Positions 5,941 through 38,827 of a stretch of DNA of 38,827 bases are shown one piece after another (the stretch's first letter is position 1; every line of letters begins with the position of its first letter). The translations under genes and the position numbers were made by a program. The notes beneath the pieces were generated by a model, which saw nothing but the letters and a program-made list of their open reading frames with translations, made no database searches and had not been told where the DNA came from. Source of the DNA: Octopus bimaculoides (taxonomy: Eukaryota); NCBI RefSeq assembly GCF_001194135.2, contig NC_068983.1:123789980-123828806 (forward strand). Direction: 5' to 3'.

Positions 5941-8132
5941 TTGGGTCATCCCATAAATAATGCAGTTTTTTTCAATTGCATGAACTAAAAGTCGGAGAGA
6001 GACAAGATAAACTACTTCCAACAACTTGCTATAAAAGCAGGTAGTAATTTTATCTTGTCCTTATTCTTAGTGCAAGTTTTGAAGAGTGCAGTTGAATTTT
6101 AACAGTTATTTTTTTAAAGCTATAATGGAAGTGACAAAGGAGCATGTTTTGCTTTATGAGTTCAATAAAGGCAACAATGCAATAGAAAGTGCAAGGAATA
6201 TTAATGCAGTATATGGGGATCGGACAATAAGTGTAAGCCAGTGTCAACGGTGGTTCCAGAAATTCCAAGCTGGAAACAACAGCCTAGAATATGGGCCTCG
6301 TCCTGGAAGATTTGTAGAGCTTGAAGAGGACGTCTTGCAAACCCTAGTGGAACAAAATCCCATTGTAACTGTTGAGGAACTAGCAGAGAAACTTGGATTT
6401 GGTCATTCAACCATTCATCAACACCTGCGTGCCATTGGAAAAGTCAGCAAATTGGGTCAATGGGTTCCTCACAAACTTTCCAAGTCTAATCGGGCACTGA
6501 GACTGAATGGGTGCTCTTCTTTGCTGTCACATCTCACAAATGTGACCGAATAGTGACTGGTGACAAGAAATGGGTTCTCTATAAAAATGTCAGGTGCTGG
6601 AGACAGTGGGTAGGGAAAGGAGAAACACTGGCACCTCAAACTAAAGAAGGTCTTCACCCACGTTAGGTGCTGTTTGATGAGATATGAAAGGTTTAGTCGA
6701 CTTTGAATATCTAAACCCAAACCAAATGATAACAAAGGAGGGATCTTGTTCAAAACGGGGGGCACCAGTATTTTCTTAACGAAACACTTTTAAACTTGGG
6801 ACACTGGTAGAATGTGTCATATAAAACATCTTTTTCTCTTAGTCTTCTTAACAAAAAAACGTACATCGCAAGTTATTTCATGTTAAAGTTGTCGTATTTC
6901 TGTAATTTCAACCAATGACTGATGTCCATTCAGCCGTAAAAATTAAGTGCTGACTACGTAAACAAACGATTCGCAGCGGTGATAAAATTATTATTTCCTT
7001 GTCAAAAAATGGCTTAAGCATATTGGCAGTAGNNNNNNNNNNNNNNNNNNNNNNNNNNNNNNNNNNNNNNNNNNNNNNNNNNNNNNNNNNNNNNNNNNNN
7101 NNNNNNNNNNNNNNNNNNNNNNNNNNNNNNNNNNNNNNNNNNNNNNNNNNNNNNNNNNNNNNNNNNNNNNNNNNNNNNNNNNNNNNNNNNNNNNNNNNNN
7201 NNNNNNNNNNNNNNNNNNNNNNNNNNNNNNNNNNNNNNNNNNNNNNNNNNNNNNNNNNNNNNNNNNNNNNNNNNNNNNNNNNNNNNNNNNNNNNNNNNNN
7301 NNNNNNNNNNNNNNNNNNNNNNNNNNNNNNNNNNNNNNNNNNNNNNNNNNNNNNNNNNNNNNNNNNNNNNNNNNNNNNNNNNNNNNNNNNNNNNNNNNNN
7401 NNNNNNNNNNNNNNNNNNNNNNNNNNNNNNNNNNNNNNNNNNNNNNNNNNNNNNNNNNNNNNNNNNNNNNNNNNNNNNNNNNNNNNNNNNNNNNNNNNNN
7501 NNNNNNNNNNNNNNNNACATGAAATAAATCCGAATACAAAAATTTTTTTCTGTTCTATAACACAAAATAGATAAGTATACGAAGTTTGAAAGTCTTTCGG
7601 TACCAAAAACACTACATAAAACATTAATGAAAACTGGTGCCCCCGTTTTGAACAAGATCCCAAAGGAGATCTACTGTGAGCAGCTTGAGTAGCTTAAGTC
7701 AGCACTAGAAGAAAAACGACCATCTTTGGTTTCAAGATGAATGGTGTTCTTCCATCAGGATAATGCTCAGCCACATATAGTGAGGATGACATTCCAAAGG
7801 CTGGAGGAGTTTGAATGGGAAACAATGCCCCACCCACCATATTTGCCAAGCAATGCCCTATCTGATTATCATTTATTCTGCGGTCTTCAAAACCATTTGA
7901 ATGGAGAAAATATGAATTCTGTAGCTGAGGTCACAACAGTACTGGAGAAGTATTTTTCATCATGGACAAGTGAATTTTGGAAGAGGGGCCTGGCAAGTCT
8001 ATCAAATAGATGGAAGAGCATTGTAGAAAATGAAGGAGAGTATATTTTAGATTAAAAAAGAATTTTGTTTATTTTAATTTTGAAAAATAAAAGAAATATT
8101 AAAAAAACTGCATTATTTATGGGATGATCGAA
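5941..8132 (+). mobile_element. Mariner (DD34D) transposon, decayed, about 1.26 kb without the nested insert
   Basis: 32-bp TIRs (5941-5972 and 8101-8132, 2 mismatches) flanked by TA. Motifs WVPHKLS, IVTGDKKWVLYKN, FHQDNAQPH and HPPYLPSNALSDYHLF, with stops and frameshifts. Confidence 0.95.
6741..7660. mobile_element. Non-autonomous DNA transposon nested in the mariner, Merlin-like (8-bp TSD, GG...CC ends)
   Basis: About 28-bp TIR GGATCTTGTTCAAAACGGGGG(G)CACCAG at both ends; TSD CAAAGGAG at 6733-6740 and 7661-7668. Removing it restores mariner ITKEIYCEQLE. Centre is an N gap (7033-7516). Superfamily assignment is inference. Confidence 0.8.
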
Positions 8133-8775: not shown

Positions 8776-9185
8776 TCTTTTTACTTGTTTCAGTCATTTG
8801 ACTGCAGCCATGCTGGAGCACCACCTTGAATTTTTTTAGTCAAATAGATTCACCCCAGGACTTATTTTTTTTAAGCTTATTACTTATTCCATCAGTTCCT
8901 TTCTGCCGAACTGCTAAATTATATGGACATAAACACACCAACACCGGTTGTAAAGCGGTGATGGAGGGAGGGACAAACACTGACACAAAGACACACACAG
9001 ATATATATATATATATATATATATAGTGGTCTTCTTTCAGTCCATCTACCAAATCCACTCACAAGGCTTTGGTTGACCCAGGGCTATAGTAGAAGACACT
9101 TACCCAAGGTGATACACACTGGGACTAAACCCAGGACTATGTGGTTGGAAAGCAAGCTTCTTACCACACAGCCAAGCCTCTGCCT
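8776..9185 (-). mobile_element. tRNA-derived SINE family A, near full length
   Basis: Reverse-complement homolog of 28588-28996. Partial copies also at about 10202-10345 (-), 29370-29597 (+) and 31370-31505 (+). Confidence 0.85.
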
Positions 9186-24745: not shown

Positions 24746-26816
24746 TAGGCATACCTCACCCTACTTCATTAATTGGTTCCAGGAGACATGACTTAAGTTG
24801 AAAAATGACTCAAGTTGAATTAACTTGTTTCTAGGCTAGGCTGGGCCAAATTTACTTGTCTCTAAGCTAAACCAATAATAACCATCCCCACTTCTGTACT
24901 TTATTTATGAATGCATTTTCAATAATACATGGTGAATAAAAACATATTTTAAGCTTACAGACGAATATTTTTTTATTTTTTAATACAGTACAGTAAAAAA
25001 AAAGTAATCTAAATGTACAAATACAATTTGGTGGTGTTTACCATACATCATGGATGCTTTGTCTATGAATACGGTTTACTATAGGACATGGTAAAATAAA
25101 AGCCATTTTTAAGCTTAAAAAACAAATTCAGTAATTATTATTATTATTATTTTGCAATAGTAAAAAAAAACAAAATTATTTTTAATTTACCAATACGTAC
25201 ATACAATTTGGTGGTTTACATCATGGATGTAGATGGCTGTGGATCGTCAACATCAGCAGCTGGCTCTGGCTGTTCTTGTTGTTTGATGCGCTTAAAAAAC
25301 CGGTTGAGAATTCCTTGAACTGTCTTCTTCTTTTCCTCAAGGATTACATCATAAGGAGCAAAGGCTTTGTGACAAGCCCCCATAATCTTGGAAAAGCATT
25401 GAGTATTTGGATCCATATCCTCAAACATAGAAAGAATTTTTTCGATATATCCAATGGTAAAGTGATGTGGCTCAGGTTTAACTTCCTCTTCTTTATTTTG
25501 CTGCTTGTGAAGCTCTATCAAATAAATCTGTGAATTGAATAGTTTTCTCCTCCTTGGAAATGAATGAATGATCTGGCAATTTTTCCAATACAATCTTACA
25601 CTCTCTGAGTGGTTGGCGTTAGGAAGGGCATCCAGCTGTAGAAACTCTGCCAAATCAGATTGGAGCCTGGTGTTTCACCAGTCCTCAGTCAAATCGTCCA
25701 ACCCATGCTAGCATGGAAAGCAGACATTAAACGATGATGATGATGATGATGATGAATCCAGTTTCGTCTACGTTAAAAATCTGTTATGGAAGGAACCTGT
25801 TTTTTTTCAATGATTTTCTTTAATGCATTAGGAAATTCCACTGCTGTTTGTGCATCAGTTGATGCACTTTCACCTTACTTCTTAATGGAGTGATAACTTC
25901 TTCGCTCCTTTAATCTCATGAACCATCCTTGACTTGCCTTGAACTCTACATCTTTCTCATCTGGATATTTTTTCTTCAGGTCCTCAAACAAAAACAACGC
26001 CTTCTCTTGAAGGATTTCTTGTCTAATAATAGCACACTGGCAATTCAACCTAACAATCCAAAGAGAAAGAAGTCTTTCCATTTCTTCAAAGATTCTGCCT
26101 CTTTTCTTATTGATGACAGTGTTCTTCATCCCTAGGGCTTCAGATTTGATATGTGCTAAAATCTTGTTCTTATGTACAATCGTTGATACAGTTGTCCGAC
26201 TCATCCCAAAAGATTGTGCAATTGCTACCACTTTTTCACCTTTTACATGGCATTTTATCATAGCCAGATTATCTTCTAACTTTATAGCATGACACTTAGT
26301 ACTTTCACTATGAATTTTCTTAGGAGCCGTGGGGGCAAAAAATAAAATCACAGATGAATGACAATGAGAAAGTAGCCAATAAACAAATGTAAACAAATTT
26401 GAATTCAAAATAATTGTGGGAATCAGGAATGACAACGACACCTAATGGCTGATATTGGAACTACAATATCACACAATATGGAACTACAAGTGCAATATGA
26501 GCTCCGAAAGACTGATAAATAAGACAACAGAGCTGATTTCATGATTTCGTTCACTAAGCTACACTACTTTATGGTGTGTATTGTAACATTTACTGTATAT
26601 ATTTTAATATGATTTCATATGCTTTTATTCTTATTTATTGTACAGTAACATGATTTTATGAGCTTTTAATGGTTTTCTAGTGATTTTGTGATTCCAATAT
26701 TTATGGCAGACAAGCATAAAGTCAAGTAAAATGACTTAACTAGATTTTTATTTTTCCATATATTATTTTTGAAAACCGACATATAATCGAGAACAACTTA
26801 AGCTGAGGCATGCCTG
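24746..26816 (-). mobile_element. Tigger/pogo transposon, internal deletion derivative with a SINE insertion
   Basis: CENP-B-type HTH ORF 25875-26441 (FKASQGWFMRLK), QIFNVDETG-LYWK motif and C-terminal DPN...EKKK...NRFFK. Degenerate TIRs TAGGCATACCTCAC / CAGGCATGCCTCAG with TA flanks. Most of the DDE domain is absent. Confidence 0.85.
25595..25754 (+). mobile_element. SINE-like family B 3' fragment inserted in the Tigger
   Basis: Core plus (GAT)n tail; splits Tigger DETG from LYWK; AAT duplicated at both junctions. Confidence 0.85.
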
Positions 26817-28587: not shown

Positions 28588-28996
28588 GGTACAAGTGTGA
28601 TTGTGTAGTAAGAAGCTTGCTTCCCAACCACAGGGTTCGGGGTTCAGTTCCACTGTGTGGCACTTTGGGCAAGTGTCTTCTACTACAGCCTCAGGCCAAC
28701 CAAAGCCTTGTGAGTGGATTTGGTAGACGGAAACTGAAAGAAGCCCGTCGTATATATGTATGTATATATGTATGTGTGTATATGTTTGTGTGTCTGTGTT
28801 TGTCCCCCCAGCATCACTTGACAACCGCTGCTGGTGTGTTTATGTCCCCGTAACTTAGCAGTTCAGCAAAAGAGAGACCGATAGAATAAGTACTAGGCTT
28901 ACAAAGAATAAGTCCTGGGGTCGATTTGCTCAACTAAAGATGGTGCTCCAGTATGGCCACAGTCAATTGACTGAAACAAGTAAAAGAGTAAAAGAG
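28588..28996 (+). mobile_element. tRNA-derived SINE family A, near full length
   Basis: tRNA-like head (GTGTAGTAAGAAGCTTGCTTCCCAACCAC...GGTTCAGTTCC), internal (TA/TG)n tract, (TAAAAGAG)n tail; homologous to the copy at 8776-9185. Confidence 0.85.
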
Positions 28997-32270: not shown

Positions 32271-32395
32271 ATTTCGTCAAAAGTTATCAGAGATCCTACA
32301 AAGCAATAAGGTGCAGTACACGATTATATTTTTTGTGGTCATTGATGGTCTTATAGTCATTCTTGAACTGCTTATTGACTTGGACATCATTAAAC
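32271..32395 (+). CDS. HVCN1: Voltage-gated proton channel (Hv1 family), exon encoding S0-S1
   Basis: Acceptor ttttgtttctattgtag|, donor |gtaagt. Translates (x)FRQKLSEILQSNKVQYTIIFFVVIDGLIVILELLIDLDIIK, aligning without gaps to human HVCN1 [41 protein letters not shown], with D112 (GAT 32344-32346), E119 and D123 equivalents. Phase 2 in, phase 1 out. Missed by the ORF track. Confidence 0.93.
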
Positions 32396-32492
32396 GTAAG
32401 TAGAAATAATTTAGTCCTTTAATTGATTTTTACAACCTGAGAAGATCATGTTCAAGAACTGTATGTATTCCATCACATACAATGGTAACATA

Positions 32493-32735
32493 TTCATCAT
32501 CATCATCAACATCATCATTTAGGCCTCCACTTTTCCATGCTTGCATAGATTGGATGGAATTTGATAAGGTGGATATTCTACAGACAAATGCTCTTCCTGT
32601 TGCTGTCACAGGTTTCCAAGTAAAGTAATATTTCCCTATGACCAGACATATCTCGGAAGATTGGAATTGACAGACACCGCTTGCATTATGACACATTTAC
32701 AGCTATCATGACATGTCAGGGCAAGGAGACGATAA
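32493..32735 (-). mobile_element. Degenerate SINE-like family B copy about 100 bp downstream of the Hv1 S1 exon
   Basis: (ATC)n tail, CCATGCTTGCAT and ATGCTCTTCCTGTTGC similarity to the other copies. Confidence 0.65.
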
Positions 32736-32891
32736 CACACACACAAACACCATACACGCACACACATGCATACATATACATATATACATGTATACACACA
32801 CATATATGAGGAAGTTCCAGAATAATAGATTATTAAATCCTACTCTGGTATTGAGTACTTTTTCTCATGGTCACTAAAATCCAATATGTGT

Positions 32892-32943
<52 letters not shown>

Positions 32944-33273
32944 AAATATATATACACACACATACATATACACACACATATATACATATACATACATAGA
33001 TACCTAAATGTGAGTGAGTGAGTGTGTGAGTGCATGTGTATGTGAGTGCGTGTGTATGTGAGTGCGTGTGTATGTGTATTTAAGTTACAATATATGGATT
33101 CAAGTGATTCAGCAGCACTCAAAAAAAGCTCCTTAATATATCATTCTACAAACCATATAGAATATATAGTACAATACAAGACAAAATGATAAGGAGTTTA
33201 TAGATCATAAATGATACTGAAATATAATTGTTTTGCAAGATTCTTGATGTGAAATCGTGTGTTGAAATAGATA

Positions 33274-33651
33274 TTGTTGTATTTGGGGATGGTCATGTTG
33301 CCAGTTTAGCTAATAAACGAACATGTATAAACAGGGGGATACAGATAATACAGGTACTCCCCATACACACGCATGCACTTTCTAAACATAGACACACATA
33401 GAGGGATATGCATGCGCAAATATAAACACATTGAATAGGAATACAAAATGGCTGATCGTTAATAAGGAGGGACACACAAATAAGAAAGAAGAAAGCAAAG
33501 GATCACTGATGAGGTCACAGAAGTGTGACGAAAGAACTTTGGCCGAAATATGATTAATGTAATATAAAGCTGAAGCAAATTAACACCAAATATATAGTGC
33601 GTGTGTTTTTATTGGCTAAACTGGCAATGTGACCATCCCCAAATACAACAA
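33274..33651. repeat. Foldback element with 44-bp inverted arms in an Hv1 intron
   Basis: Arms 33274-33317 and 33608-33651 differ at only 3 positions. Confidence 0.9.
33501..33555 (+). ncRNA. Degenerate minimal hammerhead ribozyme-like motif
   Basis: CTGATGA (33506-12), stem GTCACA-gaag-TGTGAC, GAAA (33530-33); one extra G before stem II; stem I imperfect. Confidence 0.4.
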
Positions 33652-33974
33652 GATACTGAAATAGTTTGATGCAAACGTTGATGGTTCTTGGACACCCAGT
33701 TATGCATTGCTAAGCTATTCTCTCATTTCTAGATCTTTCCACGCATTCATTCACCATTTGCTCTTAATACTTTTAATATGCGTTATTTACTTACATCTTC
33801 TTTCATAGGCTAATTATTTAAATTGACCCTTCAATATATAACTTCCTAATCTCTCTCTCTCAGCCTTCGTTTTACCTTAATTTTTCATGTAATTTTCTAA
33901 ATGAAATCTCTCCTTCCCTCCTGTGTTCTCAAGTTGGCTACATATTTTTTTTGTACCATCTCTCTAAATTAACC

Positions 33975-34495
33975 NNNNNNNNNNNNNNNNNNNNNNNNNN
34001 NNNNNNNNNNNNNNNNNNNNNNNNNNNNNNNNNNNNNNNNNNNNNNNNNNNNNNNNNNNNNNNNNNNNNNNNNNNNNNNNNNNNNNNNNNNNNNNNNNNN
34101 NNNNNNNNNNNNNNNNNNNNNNNNNNNNNNNNNNNNNNNNNNNNNNNNNNNNNNNNNNNNNNNNNNNNNNNNNNNNNNNNNNNNNNNNNNNNNNNNNNNN
34201 NNNNNNNNNNNNNNNNNNNNNNNNNNNNNNNNNNNNNNNNNNNNNNNNNNNNNNNNNNNNNNNNNNNNNNNNNNNNNNNNNNNNNNNNNNNNNNNNNNNN
34301 NNNNNNNNNNNNNNNNNNNNNNNNNNNNNNNNNNNNNNNNNNNNNNNNNNNNNNNNNNNNNNNNNNNNNNNNNNNNNNNNNNNNNNNNNNNNNNNNNNNN
34401 NNNNNNNNNNNNNNNNNNNNNNNNNNNNNNNNNNNNNNNNNNNNNNNNNNNNNNNNNNNNNNNNNNNNNNNNNNNNNNNNNNNNNNNNNNNNNNN
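33975..34495. other. Assembly gap inside an Hv1 intron
   Basis: N run; other gaps at 3368-3377, 4237-4295, 7033-7516 and 13541-13711. Confidence 0.98.
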
Positions 34496-34553
<58 letters not shown>

Positions 34554-34949
34554 CATGCTTGATCCTCTCTTCTCTTACTGGAAACCCTCTCTCTCACTGG
34601 TGGCATTCTCTATCACACCTGCAATTTCCTCTCCTGCTCTCTCTCTCTCCTGGGGCAAATGCAACTAGTTTAGCTGCCCACCTTCTTAATCTCACATTTG
34701 CATTATTGATATTCATATTCTCCTTTATCTATCTTTATTGATTTATTTATATCTGCAACTCCAGTAATGCTTAAGTTTAAGTTTTTACAATGTCCATAAT
34801 GCTTATACTTACAATGCTGCTAACACCTAGGGGCAACAATCTTAACACGCTTGAATGTTTGAATGATGACAGGTCGAAAGTAAGAACAGGTATAACATGT
34901 CTATCAAATGAACACGAAAACCTTCTTCTTTTCAGGCACTGAATAACAT

Positions 34950-35540
34950 CTCTCCTCCCTATGCTTCCTCCCACACTCCTTTCCCAGATCTTAGAGTTGG
35001 CACTGTCAATGTAGGCACACTGAAAGGAAGATCTAGAGAGATTGTAGAGATGCTTGAATGGAGACATGTTGATGTATGCTGCATACAAGAGGTAAGGTGG
35101 AGAGGAGCTTCAGCCAGGGTCCTCACAGGTGAGGCACATAAGTATAAAATCTTCTAGGAAGGTAACAACGATGGAGTAGGGGGTGTAGGCATACTCTTTG
35201 TGGAGAAATAAGTGGATAAGGTCATAGAGGTAGTCAGGGTATGTGATAGAGTGCTTAAGCTCAAGCTTTTCCTGCAGAATAGTATAGCTACAATTATCTT
35301 TGCATACACCTCACAAGTGGGTCTACTAAAGGATCAGAAGGACTACTTTTATGATACCTTTCTACAGGCTACCTCAAAGACGAGTGGCAATGACCTCATC
35401 TTTGTGGCTGGAGATTTTAATGGGCATGTCGGATAGCAATTCAGTATCTTCCATGGTGTTCATGGGGCCATGGAACGAAGAGGGAACTAGGCTACTGGAG
35501 TTCTGTGATGCATGCAACCTATTAATCTGCAACACTATGG
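34950..35540 (+). mobile_element. RTE-clade LINE fragment, AP endonuclease domain, decayed
   Basis: LRVGTVNVGTL, DVCCIQEVRW, GVGGVGIL, AGDFNGHVG motifs with several in-frame stops; inside an Hv1 intron. Confidence 0.88.
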
Positions 35541-36157
35541 TGGTGCATATTCTTTGGAGAATTTTCATTTGTTAATTAAAATATCTCTTCCCTTTATCTC
35601 AAAGTAGGAAAAACAGTATTTATTGCTCCATAATAAATTACTCTGGTAATGTTATATAATACTAGAAAAGTATTGCCAAAATCCGTGTGATGTACATGTT
35701 TTGAATATAAATGCTGAAAATTTTGTTCATAAGCTCTAACATGTGTTCTGTTTGGATCTGATATCTCAATTAATGGCTTATAGATTCTATCCTGTATGGA
35801 GTCTGAAAGTGGTGAGCTGGAAGAATAGTTAGTATATTGAACAAAAAGCTTAGTTGCATTTCTTCTGACTCTTTACATTGTGAGTTCAAATCCTGCTGAA
35901 GTCAACTTTGCCTTTCATCACTTCAGTTGATAAAATAAAGTACCAGTCAAGTATATGGGTCAATCTAAACGACTTGCTCCTTCCATTAAAAACTGCTAAC
36001 CTTGTGTCTAAAGTAGAATGAATAATGTATGGATGCTGTTATGTAGGAATCTAATGCTGATATAACATATTAGAAACAGTTCAACTAACAACAAATATAA
36101 CTGCCTTTTGTTTTAATTTTAATTTACTTTATATTTGATATTTTCTGTCTTTAATAG

Positions 36158-36576
36158 TTTCAGATAAGCCACCTGGTTATGTAGAATCCCATGAAGTGGA
36201 ATCACATGGGAGTCCCCATGACTCTCAAGACTCAACTACTCTCCACTCTATATTATCCAACGAAGATGATTACAATGAAGACCACCAGGTGGTGTATCAC
36301 AGAGGACATCATAATGCGGCTCTGGTGAAAAAACACGGCCGACATCATAACTATCACGATGAACATTCTATGGTCACTCAAGCTATTACAACTTTGAGTC
36401 AAATCTTGCTAAATAGTACGAGTGACTATGAAGAGGAGGACAACCACAGCATCTCTCATGGTCATGGAGAGGATCATGGTCATGGAGGAGGGCACCATGG
36501 CCATTCCGACAAAGAAATTGCAGAACATACCCTCCATTATGCTAGCCTTGCTATCCTGTGTATCTTTCTTGTTGAG
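36158..36576 (+). CDS. HVCN1: Hv1-family proton channel, exon encoding long His-rich S1-S2 loop and S2
   Basis: Phase-1 acceptor (AG at 36156-57, or alternative AG at 36162-63) matches the previous exon; donor |gtaagc at 36577. Ends LHYASLAILCIFLVE, matching human FHYMSITILVFFMME (H140, S143, F150, E153). Open throughout. Confidence 0.92.
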
Positions 36577-36949
36577 GTAAGCATGTTTTCCTGCTATTCT
36601 TTCCAATCTCAGTAAGAGGTGATTAAGAATATAAGGAAAAAAATAATTCTTTCAACAAGTTCCTTTTGTACAAAGTCAATATATCAGTTTCTCTTTCCTC
36701 AAGAGTTGGTACCATTCTTCATGGGTCGTTAGGTTTGTTAACAATGATTAGAACCATTCAGATTCTCAGAACTATAGTTCTGTTCTTAAGAACAAAAATG
36801 TATTTGTTTATTTATGTTTGTGAAAAGTGTAACAGAAATAATTGTCTAATTCTGGCATCAATTTCATTAGGTTAGAAGGGATTTGGAATTTATATCTTTA
36901 TATCATATCTTTATTGGTGTTCCCATTGCAATTGTATGTGGGCAGTAGA

Positions 36950-37128
36950 ATGCAGCCTGAGGGGAAAAGAGCAGTAGGGTGCACTAAAACCACATGGCAA
37001 AGGACAATTGATAAGGAAAGGAGATGAGAAGGGTGGAGAAACTGGAATGTGACCAAAACAGTGGCAGAAGACAGAGCTGGTTGGAGAGATTATGTTGAGG
37101 CACAGAGAGAACTAATTAACCATAAGTC
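36950..37128 (+). mobile_element. RTE-clade LINE 3'-terminal fragment
   Basis: PEGKRAVGCTKTTWQRTI...W...AEDRAGWRDYVEA resembles the GKRxRGRPKxTW...A.DR..WR C-terminus of RTE ORFs. Confidence 0.7.
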
Positions 37129-37232
37129 ACTCTATTTTATAATTAATTTTAATTGAAAGAAAAGGGTGACACTTATACACAGAATATATGAATATGAAAG
37201 GAAAAAATTTTGTACCAAGATTTAACATAAAA

Positions 37233-37440
37233 TTAGGAGTGCAACACATACATGAGTGCAACTTATACATGAATGTGACTTATATATGAGTGTGACTTAT
37301 ACATGAGTGCAACTGATACACAAGTGTGACTTAGACATAAGTGCAACTTACACATGAATGCAAGTTATACAGGAGTGTGACTTGTACATTAGTGTGACTG
37401 ATACACATGCAGGATTTATACATGAGTGTGACTTATACAT
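37233..37440. repeat. 17-bp minisatellite, consensus ACATGAGTG(TG/CA)ACTTAT, about 12 copies
   Basis: Eleven units in exact 17-bp register from 37250 to 37436, plus degenerate flanks. Confidence 0.92.
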
Positions 37441-37652
37441 AACTAAATATAGTAGGTAATTAGGTCTTAGAATATATGCAGAAAATAGAGCAAAATAGTC
37501 ATTGATCTAAATAAGCACAAGTTAGTAAAAGATCTTCAGTTATAGAAATAAAGTGTTTTCCCAATGTTTTCACTGTTTTATGTTTAGTTTCTTTTATGTT
37601 AAATAATTGAACACTGTTGTTTGCTATTATTCACATCAATTTATCATTTTAG

Positions 37653-37706
37653 GTCATATGTAAAGTTATAGCTGAAGGAACTCACCTATTGAAGCATAAA
37701 GCGGAA
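37653..37706 (+). CDS. HVCN1: Hv1-family proton channel, 54-nt exon encoding end of S2 and S2-S3 linker
   Basis: Acceptor ttatcattttag|, donor |gtatgt, phase 0/0. VICKVIAEGTHLLKHKAE aligns gap-free with human IIFKLFVFRLEFFHHKFE (K157, H168, K169, E171). Confidence 0.88.
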
Positions 37707-38277: not shown

Positions 38278-38619
38278 GCCATCCAAGAATCCATAAATCA
38301 GAAAAAGTATGCACCCATACATTTGTCATGAGTGCATACTTTTAACATAAAATATATTAACTGAAGTGTACTGTATTATATATCCATTATTGCTGATCTT
38401 ACCAATCAGCCCCACAGTGGGGATTCGCTGGGATGTAAGATAACAGCTCAATCATGTAACTTTATGCTCTTCAGAGTTCACAGTTACAGAAGAAAACATG
38501 GTGTTTTCTTCCATATCTGTCAGCTCTAAAGAGCACAGGGTTACATAATTGGGCTATTATCTAACATTCTGTTGAACTCCCACTGTGAAACTGATTGATA
38601 AGATTAATTGAATGGTTCC

Positions 38620-38827
38620 GGCCCATCAGGAATCACTGCAGAGATGCTCAAAATATCTGGCAGTGTTGGCTACAGCCTAGTCATCCGTATTACGAACCAG
38701 GTGATACACGAAGGAGTCATACCCAATGACTGGTGTAGCAGCACCATAGTAAACTGCTACAAAGGTAAAGGTGACGCTTTAGATACTAATAATTACAGAA
38801 GCATTAAGCTGTTAGATCAGGTTATGA
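38620..38827 (+). mobile_element. RTE-clade LINE fragment, start of reverse transcriptase domain (runs off window)
   Basis: Open frame GPSGITAEMLK...IPNDWCSSTIVNCYKGKGDALDTNNYRSIKLLDQVM. Confidence 0.88.

Follow-up and report, generated by a model that had tools for sequence, protein, structure and literature searches.

The question raised by this stretch of the Octopus bimaculoides genome (38,827 nucleotides of contig NC_068983.1, hereafter the window) is which protein is encoded by three exons near its end, and what a long histidine-rich segment between the first two transmembrane helices (S1 and S2) of that protein might do. A sequence-only reading had proposed a voltage-gated proton channel (Hv) in which this segment forms an extracellular, metal-binding and proton-buffering loop. 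We conclude that the exons are almost certainly coding exons 2–4 of LOC106880339, the cephalopod ortholog of the molluscan Hv2 proton channel, the type represented by AcHv2 of Aplysia californica. The window covers S1 and S2 only, with the first coding exon, S3, and S4 lying outside it, and its sequence is eukaryotic in character, AT-rich, and crowded with microsatellites and transposon debris.

An exhaustive HMMER search with the second of the three exons returned a sole match, XP_052822498.1 (P0054), with 100% identity over 137 residues (77–213). This protein of 656 residues is the product of O. bimaculoides LOC106880339, a gene spanning 121 kb and labeled "uncharacterized protein" in RefSeq, and the window encodes its residues 33–231. 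A word-indexed protein search and a profile search with the spliced sequence recovered no cephalopod protein, not even that of the species itself. A Pfam scan of the spliced fragment of 197 residues found no family, because the fragment is short and interrupted by the loop, and full-length P0054 gave a partial match to Ion_trans (residues 194–277). Among solved structures, human Hv1 (HVCN1, or hHv1; 5OQK, E = 8e-23) and the mouse Hv1 chimera (3WKV, E = 2e-21) were the best matches to P0054, with Ciona Ci-VSP next (E = 9e-5). The S1 and S2–S4 regions aligned with these structures end to end, in two blocks for human Hv1: residues 31–73, which include the product of exon 1, aligned to residues 7–49 of the 5OQK chain, and residues 195–288 aligned to 56–146. 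This two-block alignment indicates that approximately 115 residues are inserted where the human protein has approximately six. Structure prediction with AlphaFold2 (AF2), run with 32 aligned sequences, placed helices at residues 44–68, 191–227, 229–250, and 257–329, with nothing pore-like afterwards. Together with the alignment to hHv1, the prediction describes a four-helix voltage sensor that lacks an S5–S6 pore.

Residues characteristic of Hv channels were then located in the protein. The aspartate selectivity filter is D57 (GAT, 32344–32346) in VVIDGLIV, which corresponds to human D112 in VVLDALLV and is near-invariant among 32 Hv sequences (alignment A4). The same 32 sequences all carry the equivalent of human H140, which is H200 in octopus (CAT, 36535–36537). 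The S4 signature RxWRxxR is present as RLWRITR within LRLWRITRIING, in the part of the predicted protein beyond the window, and R268, W270, R271, R274, and N277 occupy invariant or nearly invariant columns. An unbroken helix runs from S4 to residue 329, with a predicted local distance difference test (pLDDT) score of 88–95 over residues 290–330, which corresponds to the C-terminal coiled coil and again lies beyond the window. The aspartate filter, H140, the S4 arginine triplet with its tryptophan, N214, and the coiled coil are thus all shared between human Hv1 and the octopus protein. The two differ in the S1–S2 loop, which has 6–12 residues without histidine in human Hv1 and 127 residues with 22 histidines in octopus. 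They also differ in H193, the second Zn2+ ligand of human Hv1, located in its S3–S4 linker; the octopus linker VDVAQAAKDAAG contains no histidine, and the H140/H193 pair is not universal in the Hv family. Finally, human Hv1 opens only under an outward gradient, whereas the Hv2 type, as known from AcHv2, carries inward current. The voltage sensor of the gene product would itself conduct protons with no pore domain, a proton-selective conductance gated by voltage and ΔpH being known for the ortholog AcHv2 only.

Downstream of the window, the gene encodes S3, S4, the coiled coil, and a tail of approximately 330 residues rich in serine, threonine, and proline. Disordered C-terminal tails of this composition and of 200–400 residues occur in cephalopod and some caenogastropod Hv2 proteins (P0054 residues 338–656; P0062–P0065 and P0008–P0010), and are absent from the Hv2 proteins of Haliotis, scallop, and Aplysia. 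The end of the cephalopod tail is conserved (...ILPP[IV]N...LKSPRQ...RRKSF[IV]EDKM.DSPTQKDPGAPR) and includes an RRxS site. Isoforms X1–X3 of the octopus gene arise by alternative splicing right after the coiled coil.

The spliced fragment was matched end to end, loop included, by full-length proteins of Haliotis, Pomacea, and three scallops. A profile search added a chiton, many gastropods, and Aplysia LOC101850633 (P0012, 339 residues), whose length and paired-histidine loop identify it as the published AcHv2. Searching with the full octopus protein added O. vulgaris (89% identity), Argonauta (62%), and two transcript-derived proteins. In a neighbor-joining tree of 209 well-aligned columns, which also contained short-loop proteins of the Hv1 type (from oyster, bird, and sponge; AcHv1, AcHv3, and CgHv4 were not included), the 25 sequences with a long loop, P0012 and P0054 among them, were separated from the short-loop proteins by one bipartition in 100 of 100 bootstraps. 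The octopus protein therein has 24 long-loop companions, 22 of them from named molluscs, and the four cephalopods grouped together in every replicate (100/100). An amphioxus protein (P0027, Branchiostoma lanceolatum Hv1-like, 318 residues) has an S1–S2 loop of approximately 85–95 residues that is rich in histidine, glycine, and threonine and contains several NxT sequons and four cysteines; it groups with the long-loop clade of molluscs in 86 of 100 bootstraps. Its loop indicates that long, histidine-bearing loops are not limited to molluscs.

Membership in the Hv3 subfamily was considered and ruled out by S4. The AcHv3 type has xPWRxxR, in which R1 is missing and a proline precedes the tryptophan, whereas P0054 has RLWRITR. 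The AcHv3 type is also known for leak and weak voltage dependence, and its loop of 299 residues with 13 histidines is less enriched in histidine than that of octopus.

Across the clade, the loops of Hv2 proteins (measured in a chiton, gastropods, a scallop, and cephalopods) have 64–134 residues, of which 14–23% are histidine, and a computed isoelectric point (pI) of 5.6–6.3, whereas outside the loop histidine makes up approximately 2% of these proteins. With such a pI, each loop would be net negative at pH 7–8 and net positive at pH ≤ 6. Loops about as long as that of octopus or longer were found in Nucella (129 residues), Babylonia (126), and the transcript-derived P0065 (134), and the octopus loop is therefore neither unique nor the longest. 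The sequence-only reading had noted that some molluscan paralogs have extended loops and had advised comparing length and histidine content among them; AcHv2 and the clade of long-loop proteins bear this out. Novelty of the loop, which that reading had left to be checked, did not hold, since the AcHv2 loop was already published.

The three Aplysia channels AcHv1–3 were cloned, and AcHv2 recorded by patch clamp, by Chaves et al. (FEBS J, PMC10911540), who also mention similar genes in octopus. AcHv2 is selective for protons, opens at very negative voltages, and conducts inward current; its dependence on external pH (pHo) is 44 mV/pH, the same as that of short-loop AcHv1, and it is inhibited by Zn2+, with all three Aplysia paralogs less inhibited than mammalian channels (PMC10911540). 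Its loop is described as 79 residues with 14 histidines in pairs and showed no fold in molecular dynamics; expression is strong in gut and gill, and GFP-AcHv2 gives distinct plasma-membrane fluorescence in tsA201 cells (PMC10911540). A 2023 review lists four putative O. bimaculoides Hv channels by XM accession. LOC106880339 is probably among them; XM_014930220 is listed, and its pairing with XP_014785706.1 could not be verified.

Compared directly, AcHv2 (XM_005093050; P0012) and the octopus protein share the S1 aspartate, RxWRxxR in S4, the H140 equivalent, the juxtamembrane sequence H-H-H-[ST]-[ND]-K-E-x-A-E-H-x-L-H, and a long histidine-rich loop with a pI of approximately 6 (15 histidines in 78 residues of AcHv2 by our count versus the published 14 in 79). 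The S1 exon, the 54-nt S2 exon, and the S3–S4 exon also lie at the same positions in both. The differences are that the octopus loop is longer (127 versus 78 residues), more acidic (23 versus 9 aspartates and glutamates), and has fewer sequons (2 versus 5), contains a cephalopod-conserved amphipathic helix not found in Aplysia, and comes from one exon rather than two. The proteins are approximately 40% identical in sequence, and octopus adds the disordered C-terminal tail of about 330 residues. The octopus channel is known from sequence, whereas AcHv2 is known from recordings.

The exon structure in the window, whose first intron contains an assembly gap, is given in Table 1. The spliced exons give a single stop-free frame of 199 residues with the acceptor at 36158, or 197 with that at 36164, and the translation runs from FRQKLSEILQSNKVQYTIIFFVVIDGLIVILELLIDLDIIK through the loop into HYASLAILCIFLVEVICKVIAEGTHLLKHKAE. 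Exon 1 holds the external acidic residues of ELLIDLD, was matched by six mollusc Hv2 proteins in tblastn (E = 1e-8 to 1e-11), and is 84% identical in nucleotide sequence to the Argonauta exon. Exon 3 is 85% identical to its Argonauta counterpart, and an exon of the same length is found at this place in Haliotis, Aplysia, and Argonauta. Intron 3 extends beyond the window. The first coding exon (MHSEGK...) was sought in the window and not found; in Argonauta this exon precedes the S1 exon by 46 kb.

Table 1. Features of the Hv2 gene in the window (positions counted from the first nucleotide of the window; a slash marks a splice site).
Feature	Positions	Strand	Remarks
Exon 1, S1 helix	32271–32395	+	Acceptor ...ttgtag/, donor /gtaagt; open frame; residues 33–73 of XP_052822498.1 plus a split codon at each end
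Intron 1, 3,762 bp	32396–36157	+	GTAAGT donor, AG acceptor
Assembly gap, 521 N	33975–34495		Within intron 1; (TG)28 microsatellite directly after
Exon 2, entire S1–S2 loop and first half of S2 (residues 74–213)	36158–36576	+	Donor /gtaagc
Cephalopod-conserved loop core: GRHHNYHDEH, helix SMVTQAITTLSQILL (36367–36411), sequon NST (36412–36420)	36337–36420	+	Near-identical in four cephalopods
Histidine/glycine cluster HGHGEDHGHGGGHHGH, 9 histidines in 16 residues, just outside S2	36457–36504	+	Partly a TCATGG x5 micro-repeat
Extracellular extension of S2, SDKEIAEHTLH	36505–36537	+	Aligned to 5OQK; AF2 S2 helix starts at residue 191
Intron 2, 1,076 bp	36577–37652	+	3' tail fragment of a long interspersed nuclear element (LINE); 17/51-nt minisatellite at 37237–37442
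Exon 3, 54 nt, inner half of S2 and S2–S3 turn (VICKVIAEGTHLLKHKAE, residues 214–231)	37653–37706	+	Acceptor ttttag/, donor /gtatgt

Intron 1 contains microsatellites, the gap, and the decayed remnant of a LINE endonuclease (~34990–35440), and the gap lies approximately 1.6 kb from the splice site on both sides. Since the gap is inside an intron and spliced out, continuity of the reading frame across it is irrelevant. Several observations indicate that it probably hides no exon. The position and phase of intron 1 (phase 1 after ...II-x) are the same in Haliotis cracherodii and Aplysia californica, where the loop likewise begins in the next exon. The Argonauta hians locus (81.5 kb without N) has the same intron at 1,055 bp, and there S1 is joined to the loop at the same tag/tttcag acceptor. 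Comparison of Argonauta with the window showed conservation of the three exons only, plus splice-site flanks of ~12–25 nt; within intron 1, conservation was limited to ~25 nt at each splice site. In another cephalopod, an RNA-seq contig of 3,783 nt (Logan SRR9970006_10522) has an uninterrupted open reading frame (ORF) of 744 residues in which S1 runs straight into the loop (...DLEIIK-FPEEGNGH...). In every RefSeq isoform of the locus the exons are joined directly, and the isoforms are distinguished by the C-terminal tail alone. Strictly, a cassette exon specific to octopus could still lie within the gap.

Exon 2 has tandem acceptors, aatag/tttcag/, six nucleotides apart and in frame, so that it starts at 36158 or 36164. 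The second (IIK-HKPPGY), at first preferred from a Haliotis alignment, was replaced by the first (IIK-LSDKPPGY), which fits the cephalopod orthologs and the cephalopod transcript without an alignment gap and is used by the RefSeq, O. vulgaris, and Argonauta models. The tandem acceptor (t)ag/tttcag/ is common to Octopus (window 36156–36164) and Argonauta (locus L004, 48693–48700), with both AGs kept. Use of the second AG would swap Leu-Ser-Asp for His at the start of the loop; every gene model takes the first, and the second might also be used. The Aplysia loop comes from two exons (locus L002, 74148–74285 and 76105–76239), and that of Haliotis, Argonauta, and Octopus from one, which indicates that an intron was gained or lost inside the loop.

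The loop itself extends from K73 to L199 with the acceptor at 36158 and has 127 residues, including 22 histidines (17%), 23 aspartates and glutamates (18%), and seven lysines and arginines. It contains no cysteine and two NxS/T sequons, and the histidine fraction outside it in the full-length protein is 2.3%. Its computed pI is approximately 5.6, and its net charge would shift from approximately −15 at pH 8 to approximately +8 at pH 5. The position between S1 and S2 places it on the extracellular or lumenal side, and it is probably glycosylated. The identification of an Hv-family gene from the PDB matches, aspartate filter, S4 motif, and long-loop clade, the three phase-compatible exons with canonical junctions at 32395–36158/36164 and 36576–37653, the recount of the loop, and its status as an insertion of approximately 115 residues relative to human Hv1 all agree with what had been read from the sequence.

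The loop is predicted to be mostly disordered, with AF2 pLDDT values below 50 at residues 80–104, 106–144, and 159–186. The only helix predicted within it covers residues 144–158 (pLDDT 52–57) and coincides with a block that is near-invariant in four cephalopods, GRHHNxHxxHS[MI]VTQxIxT[LV]xxx[IF]LLNST. This segment has the highest hydrophobic moment of the loop, a value reached by 1% of shuffles. At the place of the histidine/glycine cluster, all Hv2 orthologs have a histidine-rich stretch ending in HHH[ST] or HHGHS. The predicted S2 helix begins at residue 191, three turns ahead of H200, and K192, E196, H197, L199, and H200 are invariant in nine of nine Hv2-type proteins (alignment A3). The Hv2 juxtamembrane motif ...HHH[ST]NKExxEHxLH[YA]xSL is present in octopus as HHGHSDKEIAEHTLHYASL, with D or E for N in the octopods. 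An invariant E-H-x-L-H turn is thereby placed at the top of S2, right above the H140-type site.

Judging by its substitution pattern, purifying selection acts on the S1–S2 loop. In the comparison of Octopus with Argonauta, the loop has a nonsynonymous difference proportion (pN) of 0.175 and a synonymous one (pS) of 0.734. Its omega is approximately 0.07, compared with approximately 0.015 for S1 and S2; synonymous divergence (dS) is saturated for this pair, and these omega values are therefore rough. Of the 22 loop histidines, 19 are kept between the two genera, 8 of them through a CAT/CAC change, and 13 are identical in four cephalopods. Exon 2 contains one short micro-repeat only (TCATGG x5), and the codon changes at retained histidines indicate that these residues are maintained by constraint on the protein rather than by the inertia of a repeat.

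These properties were used to consider what the loop may do. We infer that it acts as a titratable polyampholyte that tunes the proton supply, with the face formed by E196, H197, and H200 completing a Zn2+ site; this mechanism is put forward tentatively, as somewhat more apt to be wrong than right. At the channel's outer mouth, the tethered loop would gather protons, buffer them, and hold divalent cations loosely, and would thus set the local proton supply and surface charge and not serve as a discrete gating sensor. The E196/H197/H200 face would supply a second Zn2+ ligand in place of the missing H193. By orthology with AcHv2, the octopus channel would open at negative voltage and could carry inward proton current. 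As a functional analogy without homology, the histidine-rich loops of ZIP (SLC39) and ZnT/CDF (SLC30) transporters and the antennae of proton pumps may be compared; these analogs have disordered (HX)n and histidine/carboxylate clusters beside the cation or proton path, and the transporter loops are mostly cytoplasmic. Identity and loop mechanism taken together form the best overall explanation, for which we see an even chance.

A number of points weigh against this explanation. The pHo dependence of AcHv2 in tsA201 cells equals that of AcHv1, and Zn2+ inhibition is weaker than in mammals for all three paralogs, so that neither of the two properties measured is obviously affected by the loop. 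The AcHv2 recordings were strongly buffered and made without a loop mutant, so that an antenna role would have been masked, which is an argument from absence and not support. The AcHv3 loop, with few histidines for its length, shows that loop expansion needs no histidine. The saturation of dS leaves the selection estimates rough, and octopus S3, S4, and gating are read from a predicted protein and a gastropod ortholog of approximately 40% identity. The literature searched contained no paper testing the function of the Hv2 loop or describing the cephalopod version.

A more far-reaching form of the proposal is doubtful but is given some weight. In it, the loop throughout the clade would be a pH-titratable charge switch and proton antenna that enables sizeable inward proton current even where the sea water or hemolymph outside is alkaline and poorly buffered. 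Cephalopods would have gained a folded amphipathic helix and a glycan that couple the loops of the two subunits. If this were true, removal of the loop would alter inward current, activation threshold, or metal sensitivity at low buffer.

It is less likely still that the loop serves as a dedicated multivalent sensor of Zn, Cu, and Ni, or as a decoy against Zn2+ block, with metal occupancy directly setting the gating. The 22 histidines and 23 carboxylates, a histidine cluster no more than 11 residues from the H140 equivalent, and the missing H193 equivalent are consistent with such a role, and HGHGEDHGHGGGHHGH with its paired histidines resembles the (HX)n loops of ZIP and ZnT. The weaker Zn2+ inhibition of the Aplysia channels relative to mammalian ones also fits at first sight; however, it is found in short-loop AcHv1 as well and, being common to all three paralogs, is not attributable to the loop. 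The loop also has no cysteine. Protection from Zn2+ block, which had been offered as one possible function of the loop, is not supported by AcHv2, which is still blocked by Zn2+ and no more weakly than AcHv1.

Equally unlikely, in our view, is that the loop is a structural or interaction ectodomain, a glycosylated spacer whose helix and NST sequon contact the other subunit or a partner, with the histidines secondary and serving, for example, pH-dependent binding. The best-conserved cephalopod block, VTQAITTLSxxLLNST, is an amphipathic helix with a sequon and not histidine alone, the loops of other molluscs carry 3–6 NxS/T sequons, and Hv channels are dimeric, with a coiled coil here at a pLDDT of approximately 90. 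On the other hand, only cephalopods have the helix block (P0065 shows a faint echo of it), whereas histidine richness and a pI of approximately 6 are clade-wide; the AF2 confidence for the helix is low (52–57), and no partner is known.

Quite improbable is a location of the channel in an intracellular acidic compartment, where the loop would be lumenal, its histidines protonated, and the domain cationic. For several molluscan Hv channels the 2023 review points out motifs for intracellular targeting, with organelle acidification as the proposed role, and the long, alternatively spliced cytoplasmic tail of the cephalopod protein has conserved short motifs, but GFP-AcHv2 is at the plasma membrane of tsA201 cells. 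The least credible reading, that the histidine-rich exon is not in the mature mRNA or that the gap hides frame-changing sequence, can point to the assembly gap in intron 1 and to a varying exon structure within the loop (two exons in Aplysia), but is opposed by canonical splice sites with compatible phases, by the same junction in the cephalopod mRNA contig and gap-free Argonauta, by purifying selection on exon 2, and by the agreement of RefSeq models from two annotation rounds.

Outside the exons, the window contains remnants of mobile elements. Two halves of a mariner/Mos1-type transposase, at 6086–6553 (+) and 7741–8055 (+), are split by an N gap (7033–7516); the N-terminal ORF matches HTH_48 (E = 2e-19), and the downstream ORF (FHQDNAQPH...SDYHLF) resembles the C-terminal catalytic part with no Pfam match. 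An ORF at 25875–26441 (−) encodes a Tc5/pogo (Tigger-like) DNA-binding domain (HTH_Tnp_Tc5, E = 8e-11) with a weak match to CENP-B_N. The LINE fragment in intron 1, right of the gap (+), is an apurinic/apyrimidinic (AP) endonuclease with three stops (Exo_endo_phos, E = 5e-6). Intron 2 contains a typical LINE C-terminal tail (36944–37100, +) and a minisatellite with approximately 12 copies of a 17-nt/51-nt unit (GAGTGCAACTTATACAT), and intron 3 has a reverse-transcriptase-like start (38605–38827, +), judged by eye, with no Pfam match, that runs off the end of the window. Dispersed repeats at 9013–9122, 25585–25757, and 28640–28763 (~100–170 nt, 70–88% identity) also occur many times in the Argonauta locus L004; they are probably an octopod family of short interspersed nuclear elements (SINEs). 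A further histidine-rich ORF of 102 residues at 2466–2774 (−), approximately half histidine (HHHHQYYCHHH...), was examined and set aside as simple-repeat noise, as it is unspliced, not conserved, and unrelated to the Hv2 gene. It indicates that, unlike exon 2, histidine-rich ORFs can arise by chance in the O. bimaculoides genome.

The octopus gene is thus an ordinary cephalopod ortholog in a known and already recorded subfamily, for which the histidine-rich loop is a published hallmark. This changes little for the field, as Hv2 channels with long histidine-rich loops have been published and the octopus gene was already in RefSeq. What is added is that the "uncharacterized protein" of LOC106880339 is now identified as the Hv2 ortholog of cephalopods, and that the helix/sequon block of cephalopods and the invariant E-H-x-L-H turn have been located. 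Also added are the purifying selection on the loop and the observation that the histidine fraction and pI of the loop are constant over at least four mollusc classes while its length and sequence drift. Together these make a stronger case for a function of the loop than the published description from a single species.

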